A DNA stretch of 64,000 nucleotides. Origin: Octopus sinensis. Its lineage: Eukaryota. This document shows positions 20,169 through 33,886 of this stretch, in pieces (position 1 is the stretch's first letter; each line of letters opens with the position of its first letter). The translations under genes were made by a program, and so were the position numbers. The notes below the pieces were generated by a model. It ran no database searches. It was not told the origin of the DNA and saw nothing but the letters and a program-made list of their open reading frames with translations. The stretch spans positions 7,564,001-7,628,000 of the forward strand of contig NC_043024.1 of assembly GCF_006345805.1 (NCBI RefSeq). Direction: 5' to 3'.

Positions 20169-20465
20169 ACACAGAAAAAAACAAGGAGAGAAAAAAATGC
20201 GTGTAGGAGCTAAGACATAGATCAATAGACAGACATAGAGAGAGACAGACACACAGACAGATAGATGAACAAACATGTATGGATAGATAGACAGACAAAC
20301 AGACAAGCAAACACACAGACAGACAGATAGAAAAGCAGGTAGAGAAATGCAGTATTATTTTATGCTATTTGTTCCATACAAAGCTGACCTCAAGCTACAC
20401 AGCAACAAATGATGATGATGGTGATGATGATGTGTCAAAACATAGAATTATAAAGACCAAAATAC

Positions 20466-20588
20466 CATCTATCGGCACATCTTGTATACCATCTTTACAT
20501 ACAACTGACGTGTTAGCTGTGCAGTTACAGTTTGTGTTAGGAATTGGTCCAACAGGAAACCTTTCGCCACCGTGAAGGCAGAAAGGAA
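20466..20588 (-). CDS. Exon of Cys-module repeat gene (module 4)
   Basis: Acceptor CTTTCTTTTCTTTACAG|, donor G|GTATTT. 123 nt, phase 1-1: (V)PFCLHGGERFPVGPIPNTNCNCTANTSVVCKDGIQDVPID. Confidence 0.88.
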
Positions 20589-20739
20589 CTGTAAAGAAAA
20601 GAAAGCTTATATATATGTGTGTGTGTGTATATATATATATATATAAATTGTGACTAAGGTTTGGTGGAAGATTTTAATTCAAAACTTATGAAAACAAAAC
20701 ATTTGTACTCAGAGCTAGAGCCGGTTTCAGCCGGGTTGG

Positions 20740-23700
20740 TAATGAGGAATGGAGGTGGTTCTAAGGATGGAGTACAACAGAGGGGAGAGAGCATGGCTGG
20801 AGGAAGATAATGAGGAATGGAGGTGGTTCTAAGGATGGAGTATAACAGAGGGGAGAGAGCATGGCTGGAGGAAGATAAAAAGGAATGGAGGTGGTTCTAA
20901 TGATGGAGGATGGAGTATAAAAGAGGGGAGAGAGAGCATGGCTGGAGGAAGATAAAAAGGAATGGAGGTGGTTCTAATGATGGAGGATGGAGTATAACAG
21001 AGGGGAGCGAGCATGGCTGGAGGAAGATAAGGAATGGAGGTGGTTCTAATGATGGAGGATGGAGTATAACAGAGGGGAGCGAGCATGGCTGGAGGAAGAT
21101 AATAAGGAATGGAGGTGGTTCTAATGATGGAGGATGGAGTATAACAGAGGGGAGAGAGCATGGCTGGAAGAAGATAAAAAGGAATGGAGGTGGTTCTAAT
21201 GATGGAGGATGGAGTATAACAGAGGGGAGAGAGCATGGCTGGAAGAAGATAAAAGGAATGGAGGTGGTTCTAATGATGGAGGATGGAGTATAACAGAGGG
21301 GAGAGAGCATGGCTGGAGGAAGATAATAAGGAATGGAGGTGGTTCTAATGATGGAGGATGGAGTATAACAGAGGGGAGAGAGCATGGCTGGAGGAAGATA
21401 AAAGGAATGAGGTGGTTCTAATGATGGAGGATGGAGTATAACAGAGGGGAGAGAGCATGGCTGGAAGAAGATAAAAAGGAATGGAGGTGGTTCTAATGAT
21501 GGAGGATGGAGTATAACAGAGGGGAGAGAGCATGGCTGGAGGAAGATAAAAGGAATGGAGGTGGTTCTAATGATGGAGGATGGAGTATAACAGAGGGGAG
21601 AGAGCATGGCTGGAAGAAGATAATAAGGAATGGAGGTGGTTCTAATGATGGAGGATGGAGTATAACAGAGGGGAGAGAGCATGGCTGGAGGAAGATAATA
21701 AGGAATGGAGGTGGTTCTAATGATGGAGGATGGAGTATAACAGAGGGGGAGAGCATGGCTGAAAGAAGATATAAAGGAATGGAGGTGGTTCTAATGATGG
21801 AGGATGGAGTATAACAGAGGGGAGAGAGCATGGCTGGAGGAAGATAAAAAGGATGGAGGTGGTTCTAATGATGGAGGATGAGTATAACAGACGGAGAGAG
21901 CATGGCTGGAAGAAGATATAAGGAATGGAGGTGGTTCTAATGATGGAGGATGAGTATAACAGAGGGGAGAGAGCATGGCTGGAGGAAGATAAAAAGGAAT
22001 GGAGGTGTTCTAATGATGGAGGATGGAGTATAACAGAGGGGAGAGAGCATGGCTGGAAGAGATAAAAAGGAATGGAGGTGGGTCTAATGATGGAGGATGG
22101 AGTATAACAGAGGGGAGAAGCATGGCTGGAGGAAGATAATGAGGATGGAGGTGGTTCTAAGGATGAGTATAACAGAGGGGAGAGAGCATGGCTGGAGGAA
22201 GATAAAAAGGAATGGAGGTGGTTCTAAGGATGGAGTACACAGAGGGGAGAGAGCATGGCTGGAGGAAGATAAAAAGGAATGGAGGTGGTTCTAATGATGG
22301 AGGATAACAGAGGGGAGAGAGCATGGCTGGAGGAAGATAATGAAAATGGAGGTGGTTCTAAGGATGGAGGATGGAGTATAACAACGAGGGGAGAGAGCAT
22401 GGCTGGAAGAAGATATAAAGGAATGGAGGTGGTTCTAATGATGGAGGATGGAGTATAAAAGAGGGGAGAGAGCATGGCTGGAAGAAGATAAAAAGGAATG
22501 GAGGTGTTCTAATGATGATGGAGGATGAGTATAACAGAGGGGAGAGAGCATGGCTGGAAGAAGATAAAAAGGAATGGAGGTGGTTCTAATGATGGAGGAT
22601 GGAGTATAACAGAGGGGAGAGAGCATGGCTGGAGGAAGATAATAAGGAATGGAGGTGGTTCTAATGATGGAGGATGGAGTATAACAGAGGGTAGAGAGCA
22701 TGGCTGAAGAAGATAAAAAGGAATGAGAGGTGGTTCTAATGATGGAGGATGGAGTATAACAGAGAGAGAGAGCATGGCTGGAGGAAGATAAAAGGAATGG
22801 AGGTGGTTCTAATGATGAGGATGGAGTATAACAGAGGGGAGAGAGTATGGCTGGAGGAAGATAAAAAGGAATGGAGGTGGTTCTAATGATGGAGGATGGA
22901 GTATAACAGAGGGGAGAGAGAATGGCTGGAAGAAGATAAAAAGGAATGGAGGTGGTTCTAATGATGGAGGATGGAGTATAACAGAGGGGAGAGAGCATGG
23001 CTGGAAGAAGATAAAAAGGAATGGAGGTGGTTCTAATGATGGAGGATGGAGTATAACAGAGGGGAGAGAGCATGGCTGGAGGAAGATAAAAAGGAATGGA
23101 GGTGGTTCTAATGATGGAGGATGGAGTATAACAGACGGGAGAGAGCATGGCTGGAAGAAGATATAAAGGAATGGAGGTGGTTCTAATGATGGAGGATGGA
23201 GTATAACAGAGGGGAGAGAGCATGGCTGGAGGAAGATAAAAAGGAATGGAGGTGGTTCTAATGATGGAGGATGGAGTATAACAGAGGGGAGAGAGCATGG
23301 CTGGAAGAAGATAAAAAGGAATGGAGGTGGGTCTAATGATGGAGGATGGAGTATAACAGAGGGGAGAGAGCATGGCTGGAGGAAGATAATGAGGAATGGA
23401 GGTGGTTCTAAGGATGGAGTATAACAGAGGGGAGAGAGCATGGCTGGAGGAAGATAAAAAGGAATGGAGGTGGTACTAAGGATGGAGTACAACAGAGGGG
23501 AGAGAGCATGGCTGGAGGAAGATAAAAAGGAATGGAGGTGGTTCTAATGATGGAGGATAACAGAGGGGAGAGAGCATGGCTGGAGGAAGATAATGAAGAA
23601 TGGAGGTGGTTCTAAGGATGGAGGATGGAGTATAACAGAGGGGAGAGAGCATGGCTGGAAGAAGATAAAAAGGAATGGAGGTGGTTCTAATGATGGAGGA

Positions 23701-32566: not shown

Positions 32567-33591
32567 GATGGGGTGCACTCTGTCTCCAACAATTCGGTGC
32601 GACATCAGTGCAGAATCACTTCCCTCCTACAAGTCATCCTAACGAGACGTCTGCGTTGGCTGGGGTCATGCCCTCCGCCGTCAACCAGGAGAATACATCT
32701 AAAGTAATTGCCCCAGCTCCCCTTCAGTGTTGGCGAAAGCGATGGGGTGCACTCTGTCTCCAACAATTCCGTGCGACACCAGTGCAGAATCACCTCCCTC
32801 CTACAAGTCATCCTAACGAGACGTCTGCGTTGGCTGGGGTCACGCTCTCCGCCGTCAACCAGGAGAATTCATCTACGAAGCAATTGCCCCAGCTCCCCTT
32901 CATTGTTGGCGAAAGCGATGGGGTGCACTCTGTCTCCAACAATTCGGTGCGGCACCAGTGCAGAATTACCTCCCTCCTACAAGTCATCCTAACGAGACGT
33001 CTGCGTTGGCTGGGGTCACGGCCTCCGTCGTCAACCAGGGGAATTCATCTACGAAGCAATTGCCCCGGCTCTCCTTCAGTGTTGGCGAAAGCGATGGGGT
33101 GCACTCTGTCTCCAACAATTCGGTGCGGCACCAGTGCAGAATCACTTCCCTCCTACAAGTCATCCTAACGAGACGTCTGCGTTGGCTGGGGTCATGCCCT
33201 CCGCCGTCAACCAGGAGAATACATCTAAAGTAATTGCCCCAGCTCCCCTTCAGTGTTGGCGAAAGCGATGGGGTGCACTCTGTCTCCAACAATTCGGTGC
33301 GGCACCAGTGCAGAATCACCTCGCTCCTACAAGTCATCCTAACGAGACATCTGCGTTGGCTGGGGTCACGCCCTCCGCCGTCAACCAGGAGAATACATCT
33401 AATGTAATTGCACCAGCTCCCCTTCACTGTTGGCGAAAGCGATGCGGTGCACTCAGTGTCCAACAATTCGGTGCGGCACCAGTGTAGAATCACCTCCCTC
33501 CTACAAGTCATCCTAACGAGACGTCTGCGTTGGCTGGGGTCACGCTCTCCGCCGTCAAGCAGGAGAATATATCTACGAAGCAATTGCCCCA
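32567..33591 (+). repeat. 174/176-bp tandem array (6 units) derived from RTE coding sequence
   Basis: Units start at 32567, 32741, 32917, 33093, 33267, 33441 and match the single-copy LINE fragment at ~18325-18492. Confidence 0.92.
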
Positions 33592-33739
33592 GTATTATTT
33601 GCAGTATTATTTTATGCTATTTGCAGTACTATTTTATGCTATTTGTTCCATACAAAGCTGACCTCAAGCTACACAGCAACAAATGATGATGATGGTGATG
33701 ATGATGTGTCAAAATATAGAATTATGAAGACCAAAATAC

Positions 33740-33862
33740 CCTCTGGCAGCATATCTTTTATATCATGTTCACATTCAATTGACAGGTTAGCTGTGCAGGT
33801 ACAGTTTGTGTCAGGAATTGGTCCAACTGGATACATGTCGCCACCTTGAAGGCAGAAAGGAA
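33740..33862 (-). CDS. Exon of Cys-module repeat gene (module 3)
   Basis: Acceptor CTTTTCTTTTCTTTACAG|, donor G|GTATTT. 123 nt, phase 1-1: (I)PFCLQGGDMYPVGPIPDTNCTCTANLSIECEHDIKDMLPE. Confidence 0.88.
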
Positions 33863-33886
33863 CTGTAAAGAAAAGAAAAGGTTATG

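Follow-up and report, generated by a model that had tools for sequence, protein, structure and literature searches.

Organization of LOC115225789 and its module exons

The stretch of DNA described here, referred to below as the window, is a 64,000-nucleotide (nt) segment of Octopus sinensis contig NC_043024.1 (positions 7,564,001 to 7,628,000), and its minus strand carries exons of the RefSeq gene LOC115225789, including two neighboring paralogous exons, c and d (coding exons 9 and 10), that are the subject of this analysis. RefSeq isoform X1 of the gene (437 amino acids) is exactly reconstructed from 12 phase-1 exons, of which exons 1 to 5 lie past the high end of the window. The C-terminal half of the protein is a string of approximately 41-residue modules with four cysteines and one phase 1-1 exon apiece; four further exons of the same kind (a, b, e, and f), all phase 1-1, are present on the minus strand in the window (Table 1). 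A signal peptide, MNFVFILSTLLVICGLRYAGG, called by inspection and of typical appearance, is present at the N terminus, and the hydrophobic leader is the same in O. sinensis and Octopus vulgaris. A six-frame search of the whole 2.72-Gb O. sinensis genome recovers this locus only, and there are no further modules or paralogues within 60 kb on either side or genome-wide; LOC115225789 is thus a single-copy gene that does not belong to an expanded multigene family.

Exons c and d are each bounded by a polypyrimidine tract with AG and by a GTATTT donor, and the splice sites of both 123-nt exons are good (ttttctttacag/TTCC ... G/gtattttgg, phase 1-1, with junctions at the slashes). The two exons share one reading frame, PFCL(H/Q)GG..PVGPIP.T.C.C.....C, which is followed by a ten-residue tail, and their four cysteines are invariant in both species. 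When all of the modules are aligned, three cysteine columns are invariant and the third cysteine is absent from module a; four is the standard number, with five in module b and three in module a, and no module has a CCxxC motif. The invariant residues are the cysteines, G6-G7, PVGPIP, and C-x-C-T-A-N, and the variable ones lie in the first hairpin, the loop ahead of the last cysteine, and the entire linker. N-glycosylation sequons, as read from the translations, move between the copies within codons 19 to 27, being N21-C-T and N25-T-S in d, and N19-C-T and N25-L-S in c.

Among the RefSeq isoform models, X1 to X3 contain both c and d, X4 is without c, and X5 is without d. Because c and d are carried together in X1 to X3, they are cassette exons in the annotation and not mutually exclusive exons, of which only one of the two would be used. 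We also considered the conserved intron next to each exon as a selector for mutually exclusive splicing; this was rejected, as both exons co-occur in RefSeq isoforms, and the 118-nt intron piece, being no more conserved than other introns, gives no sign of a selector element.

Exons c and d diverge by amino acid replacement

Exons c and d of O. sinensis differ at 20 of 123 nt, and 19 of these differences are nonsynonymous, with a single synonymous change (CCA/CCT). The residue is changed in 17 of 40 codons, leaving the four cysteines and PVGPIP untouched, and these counts agree with those in a sequence-only reading of the window that had singled out the exon pair. By the Nei-Gojobori method, the proportions of differences at nonsynonymous (pN) and synonymous (pS) sites are 0.203 and 0.038, respectively, with a ratio of 6.1 (Fisher one-sided p=0.036), in line with the rough values of about 0.2 and 0.03 proposed from the sequence alone. 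A maximum-likelihood codon model gives a ratio of nonsynonymous to synonymous substitution rates (omega) of 5.6 (likelihood ratio test [LRT] p=0.036).

The introns flanking c and d are far more similar than the exons. The downstream adjoining pieces differ at 3/118 nt, as had also been reported, and the upstream acceptor-side flanks differ at 1 of 40 aligned nt and in microsatellite length. Exon divergence exceeds that of both flanks (p=4e-5), and divergence at nonsynonymous sites exceeds that at synonymous plus intron sites (p=2.5e-6). The exon/intron edge is sharp, with nine differences in the last 30 exon nt and three in the following 118 nt. We note that the 118-nt intron piece is found only twice in the 2.72-Gb genome; repeated insertion of a transposon is therefore not its origin, and its interpretation as a dispersed repeat was rejected.

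The sequence-only reading had also compared two intron segments starting at 19785 and 20643. Their near-identity is borne out (2/176 nt differ), but they are not counterparts flanking c and d, since both copies flank exon d. The correct paralogous intron comparison, for which O. vulgaris provides 972 sites with 14 differences (see below), makes the contrast between exon and intron stronger.

Replacement changes are in excess throughout the gene

The rates of change between species were determined by comparison of O. sinensis (sin) with O. vulgaris (vul), using one haploid assembly per species. Exons c and d are present in both species in the same order, and the orthologues can be paired through the differing upstream flanks of the two copies; since order and orthology are common to both species, the duplication is older than the species split. 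In a tree of the four c and d sequences there are approximately 28 substitution events, only one of which is synonymous. There are 27 variable exon sites, 11 of which are fixed between c and d, and the remaining changes post-date speciation and fall on all four terminal lineages (sin_c, vul_c, sin_d, and vul_d). Seven codons have three residue states among the four sequences. The 118-nt intron has four variable sites in the same comparison. The c orthologues have 5 differences, 4.5 of them nonsynonymous by path averaging, versus 1/118 in the intron; the d orthologues differ at 12/123 nt, with 11 of the changes nonsynonymous, versus 6/972 in the intron. Likewise, c and d within O. vulgaris differ at 20/123 nt, versus 14/972 in the paralogous intron (p=8.6e-12).

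The excess is not confined to c and d. Across the whole coding sequence (CDS), there are 46.5 nonsynonymous and 2.5 synonymous differences (2.5/277 sites) between the species, corresponding to a pN of 0.045 and a pS of 0.009 (Fisher p=8.6e-4), and a pairwise codon model gives an omega of 5.6 (LRT p=0.0018), rising to 8.9 (p=0.0014) when exon f is left out. The exon-flanking introns differ at 29/3264 sites (0.0089), significantly fewer than nonsynonymous sites (p=6e-10), and larger intron blocks are 1.0 to 1.65% different; the neutral rate is thus well defined by the introns, and the synonymous sites match it. Exons 1 to b, taken by themselves, show 17 replacements without a single silent change (p=0.0026), and the nonrepeated N-terminal exons, for which the genome contains no paralogue, have ten nonsynonymous and no synonymous differences. 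Replacement sites exceed the neutral rate by a factor of 3 in the N-terminal part and by a factor of 8 in modules c to e. The CDS also has two in-frame indels between the species.

It is likely, in our assessment, that c and d are real, tandemly duplicated coding exons of a single-copy gene under recurrent positive (diversifying) selection. The selection is recurrent because the excess of replacements is present in all four c and d lineages, repeatedly at the same codons, with the scaffold of cysteines, glycines, and PVGPIP untouched. The earlier proposal, in which diversifying selection is strong and the cysteine scaffold stays fixed, is therefore supported, and a ratio above 1 stays significant for c and d and for the whole CDS with the O. 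vulgaris orthologues included; what does not stand is its restriction to the module, as the data support selection that is gene-wide rather than module-specific, and strongest in c, d, and e.

History of the locus in two species

In O. vulgaris, the order of exons at the corresponding locus (L020) is a, b, c, d1, d2, e, and f, with a dead exon e copy between c and d1. The alignment of the O. vulgaris c unit with its d2 unit extends for at least 2.7 kb, covering exon e and sequence past it. Among 972 intron sites free of gaps, 14 (1.4%) differ between the paralogues and 6 (0.6%) between the orthologues, with ten states unique to vul_c, four to vul_d2, and two to sin_d. This is the pattern of a duplication that took place roughly twice as long ago as the speciation and has been left undisturbed, and not of recent homogenization.

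The two O. vulgaris copies of d (d1, L020:80428-80550, placed by its offset from d2; d2, 81965-82087) have identical exons and a period of 1537 bp, and their flanks have approximately two differences in 890 nt. The dead exon e copy after c (L020:71980-72130) has a 36-nt deletion that takes the acceptor and the first codons, and three states are seen at one exon e codon: ACA (sin e), ATA (vul e), and AAA (dead copy). O. sinensis has lost approximately 2.4 kb after c, the dead e copy included, with the consequence that the putatively LINE-derived 174-nt array (see below) now adjoins the 118-nt intron piece. At nt 109 of the exons (window positions 33754 and 20480) c and d alike carry A (Asp) in O. 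sinensis and G (Gly) in O. vulgaris, which reflects either a parallel change or a very short exchange between c and d within a species.

The annotated O. vulgaris protein, CAI9741643.1, uses d1 and d2, with an internal GT in d1, and leaves out c, e, and f. Its odd C terminus arises because the gene model reads past the d2 donor into the intron up to a stop.

Domain, fold, and homology searches

Pfam searches (hmmscan) with the modules and the whole protein give no match at E<=10, sequence and profile searches of PDB give chance matches only, and word-indexed protein searches with the joined modules and the N-terminal half give no match. A module profile searched against 1.8 billion proteins has one strong match, the O. 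vulgaris protein, which carries the UniRef label 'Kielin/chordin-like'; a follow-up found the RefSeq proteins of LOC115225789 itself. The weaker profile matches are to unrelated cysteine-rich repeats (SRCR and RCC1), apart from one protein of the ctenophore Pleurobrachia bachei (P0002 in EukProt; E 8.5e-6 in the search of 1.8 billion proteins). Its repeats, C-x-W-E-G-R-x-Y-P-E-G-P-I-x-E-R-C-S-C-x6-C, are strikingly like the octopus module and are the only similar module that we found elsewhere. A literature search with the locus, its accessions, and Octo-SAP found no mention of it, nor is a gene of this kind mentioned in a recent paper on octopus population genomics.

An AlphaFold model of the module, built with 11 module sequences, has a predicted local distance difference test score (pLDDT) of 80, with residues 1 to 30 at 87 to 90 and low confidence in the last ten residues, and predicts four short strands forming two hairpins. 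Foldseek searches with this model give a best E value of 4.7 and template modeling (TM) scores of 0.54 to 0.59 to the D assemblies of MUC2, VWF, and MUC5AC, which are insignificant. A VWC domain (PF00093) has ten cysteines with CxxCxC and CCxxC motifs; the modules, with their three to five cysteines, no CCxxC, and no profile match, do not belong to it. They agree with fibronectin type I (PF00039) in length, four cysteines, a phase 1-1 exon, and four predicted strands, but have no Pfam match to it, and the Foldseek result is insignificant.

Alternative explanations

Rapid exon divergence could be only apparent if the duplicate exons were old and their introns alone had been recently homogenized by gene conversion, as the 97.5 to 98.6% identity of the paralogous introns and the nt 109 state common to both copies within each species might suggest. 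This is extremely unlikely, because the synonymous divergence of the exons (1/26.5, or 0.038) fits the intron and not an old duplication, the site patterns over the 972 sites follow orthology and include a fixed A/G difference between c and d common to both species, and conversion tracts would need to end exactly at both splice sites; moreover, orthologous exons are also faster than their introns. The sequence-only reading had itself listed intron-only conversion as a threat to its interpretation, and the threat is largely removed by these data. Decay of the gene, or relaxed constraint on one or both exons as unexpressed pseudo-exons (nonexpression of one exon being another threat listed in that reading), is similarly hard to credit. 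The O. vulgaris annotation drops c and runs into an intron, exon f is a frameshifted relic, O. vulgaris has a dead exon e copy, and transcript-derived proteins were not found in the protein collection searched, but relaxation cannot lift pN (0.045 to 0.20) over the neutral rate (0.009 to 0.025), open frames, splice sites, and every cysteine are kept in both species in all exons, and the RefSeq isoform models include both c and d. An artefact of assembly, in which alleles, or repeats that were collapsed or expanded, came to lie in tandem as c and d, is the most far-fetched of explanations: the exons do sit amid more than 25 kb of satellite arrays that are hard to assemble, and yet the independent assembly of the second species has the same order of c and d, with flanks and substitutions that are copy-specific.

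A mutational process confined to exons and requiring no selection, such as ectopic conversion from other modules or targeted hypermutation, would account for the clustering of several c/d changes and for double hits within one codon, and homology among modules a to f is limited to exons, so that ectopic tracts would stay within them. We nonetheless regard it as very improbable. The 11-mers containing species-specific states occur nowhere else in either locus, and hence there is no conversion donor; synonymous sites are not raised (2.5/277); and the unique N-terminal exons show the same 10:0 ratio with no paralogue to convert from. Ectopic conversion was accordingly rejected as the source of the exon changes. 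The alternatives (ALTERNATIVES) of intron-only conversion, relaxed constraint, ectopic conversion, and assembly artefact are thus each contradicted. Somewhat different is long-lived balanced polymorphism, in which the two single-haplotype assemblies happened to sample divergent alleles. Such behavior is common among immune-type and recognition genes, one haplotype per species was available, and the three-state codons fit either model; the 11 c/d sites common to both species are clearly fixed between the paralogues, and no observation speaks directly against it. We consider it improbable, and note that it is a variant of diversifying selection and not its denial.

Several considerations weigh against recurrent diversifying selection on c and d, or limit its interpretation. 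The comparison involves two species with a single haploid assembly each, such that fixed differences are inseparable from polymorphism, and the test of c versus d taken by itself is marginal (p=0.036). The usage of the two exons is that given by RefSeq models. Half of the c/d changes are in the linker, which is predicted to be disordered and where selection on a binding surface is less obvious, although the linker, with 9/30 nt changed, has diverged well beyond the neutral level. Foldseek supports the assignment of a fold only weakly (E>4), and the full-length AlphaFold model is useless (pLDDT 33).

Other modules and intron landscape

The coordinates of the exons and of the intron features are listed in Table 1. 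In the terminal exon f, the N-terminal half of the module (GCPYDNMVYPFGPFPEE) is in frame and the CTCKKDGHLEC half is one base out of frame, with the result that the last 25 residues of the protein are an unrelated tail; the frame is the same in O. vulgaris, where the stop comes earlier.

Table 1. Positions of LOC115225789 exons, their flanks, and intronic repeats in the window
Feature	Position	Strand	Comment
Coding exon 6, 27 nt	59685..59711	-	
Exon a (coding exon 7), divergent module without third Cys	40772..40915	-	
Exon b (coding exon 8), module with fifth Cys	37096..37236	-	9-nt in-frame indel relative to O. vulgaris
Acceptor-side flank of c, about 25 unique nt and a (TA)n(CA)n(TA)n microsatellite	33863..33931	-	c/d homology reaches no further upstream
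Exon c (coding exon 9), one 41-codon four-Cys module	33740..33862	-	Splice sites, frame, X1 reconstruction; O. vulgaris orthologue L020:70870-70992
Intron piece directly 3' of c, 118 nt	33622..33739	-	Paralogous to 20348-20465; 1/118 versus O. vulgaris orthologue
174-nt tandem array, 5.9 copies	32567..33592	.	Adjoins the 118-nt intron piece of c
75-nt satellite, about 162 copies	20832..32456	.	Most of the c-d intron
Satellite leader, variant B	20643..20818	.	3' end (transcript sense) of the c-d intron; 98.9% identical to 19785-19960
Acceptor-side flank of d	20589..20646	-	(TA)n(CA)n(TA)n microsatellite as in c
Exon d (coding exon 10), paralogue of c	20466..20588	-	X1 reconstruction; O. vulgaris orthologues d1 and d2
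Intron piece directly 3' of d, 118 nt	20348..20465	-	2/118 versus O. vulgaris orthologue
Satellite leader, variant A, and one satellite unit	19785..19960	.	d-e intron; direct repeat with 20643-20818 around exon d
Exon e (coding exon 11), older paralogous module	19297..19425	-	Six nonsynonymous and no synonymous differences versus O. vulgaris
Exon f, terminal coding exon, relic module	3031..3161	-	Frame shifted after PFPEE; ends the protein

The leader segments A and B are two old variants, each conserved in O. vulgaris, where variant B precedes both d1 and d2, and the interval between the leader repeats is the one duplicated in that species to give d1 and d2. The 174-nt unit of the array next to c is also present once at 18327-18502, where it runs on into further sequence (18327-18700). 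On a by-eye reading of the translation, the sequence beyond this unit would be the C-terminal end of open reading frame 2 of a non-long-terminal-repeat (non-LTR) retrotransposon, and the 174-nt array is provisionally taken to be a tandem amplification of a fragment from the 3' end of such an element, similar to a long interspersed nuclear element (LINE).

Most of the e-f intron is a 41-nt minisatellite (window positions 3242-16002; about 260 copies and degenerate ones, 12.7 kb), and further arrays lie at 1185-2937 and 37554-39241; counted together with the two arrays of the c-d intron, tandem repeats make up considerably more than 25 kb of intron sequence of this gene in the window. The large intron that precedes exon a also holds two copies of approximately 3 kb (43508-46484 and 53052-56066) in inverted orientation and 75% identical, which probably are old copies of a transposon.

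A possible mechanism and role

The duplication copied at least 2.7 kb, with exon d, its intron, exon e, and further sequence, shortly before the split of O. sinensis and O. vulgaris, a date based on the differences of approximately 1.4% between paralogous introns and approximately 0.6 to 0.9% between orthologous ones. Introns and synonymous sites then drifted neutrally while amino acid changes piled up 5 to 10 times faster in c, d, and e, and about 3 times faster elsewhere in the protein. New modules may arise by unequal crossing-over between intronic satellite repeats, a proposal suggested by the position of exon d between direct leader repeats and the duplication of that interval in O. vulgaris, and the number of modules could be varied further by the skipping of c or d. 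Each module would be a small beta-hairpin unit, presumably stapled by disulphides, with the exposed loops and the ten-residue linker forming a putative binding surface that co-evolves with a changing partner.

The sequence-only reading had suggested a venom, immune, or recognition role. As to the biological setting, we would tentatively rank reproductive recognition (sperm, egg, or female-tract) first, followed by immunity and then saliva or venom, as a reproductive protein best fits a single-copy gene evolving this fast between sister species. More specifically, LOC115225789 could encode a recognition protein restricted to octopuses, such as a factor of the sperm, egg, or female tract, that aids reproductive isolation in the cryptic Octopus vulgaris complex. 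This reading, which invokes satellite-driven exon duplication, cassette splicing, and a gene-wide omega of approximately 5 to 9, is speculative and rather unlikely in this particular form, but if true it would give cephalopods their first candidate for a gamete-recognition or 'speciation' gene.

Whatever the role, a gene-wide omega of approximately 5 between sister species, with synonymous sites changing at the intron rate, ranks with the strongest signs of adaptive protein evolution seen for any gene, and it marks an uncharacterized, taxonomically restricted, secreted octopus protein. The locus provides a concrete handle on a co-evolutionary interaction in cephalopods, be it reproductive, immune, or predatory; to our knowledge, almost none of the molecules of such interactions are known in this group. 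It also illustrates how intronic satellites can make new coding modules, with selection then pushing the copies apart, and it flags an annotation problem, in that the O. vulgaris model is without c, e, and f and runs into an intron.

Comparison with known systems

Accelerated evolution of exons is familiar from venom genes with cysteine frameworks, such as crotaline phospholipase A2, the three-finger toxins, and the conotoxins. As in LOC115225789, the exons of these genes evolve several-fold faster than the introns, replacements greatly outnumber silent changes, the cysteines and signal peptide are fixed, and the synonymous and intron rates are equal. Venom genes, however, form multigene families, whereas LOC115225789 is single-copy with internal module exons; its acceleration spans the whole mature protein, nonrepeated exons included, and it has no match to a toxin family in Pfam and no sequence match to a PDB chain.

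A second group of relevant examples is the fast-evolving, modular gamete-recognition proteins, including abalone VERL and lysin, and sea-urchin bindin and EBR1. These resemble LOC115225789 in being secreted, in having a gene-wide omega well above 1 between sister species, and in having tandem modules that vary in number between species, as illustrated by d1 and d2 of O. vulgaris. The VERL repeats are homogenized by concerted evolution, though, while c and d are driven apart, and LOC115225789 has no ZP-N or other recognizable domain.

At the level of the module, there is a likeness to the N-terminal subdomain of VWC and to fibronectin type I, which share the arrangement C-x3-G-x2-[YF]-x2-G ... 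C-x-C ... C over approximately 40 residues, encoding by a single phase 1-1 exon, and a two-hairpin, all-beta structure, the last being predicted for the octopus module. Unlike VWC, the octopus module has only four cysteines and no CCxxC second subdomain, and it has no Pfam match to VWC or fn1. In exon organization, c and d are similar to tandem pairs of alternatively spliced exons, in that they are homologous neighbors of equal length and phase with c-only and d-only isoforms, but they depart from mutually exclusive pairs by their joint presence in X1 to X3 and their separation of 13 kb. LOC115225789 therefore stands apart from the known cases as a single-copy gene with internal module exons, the tandem copies of which diverge instead of homogenizing.

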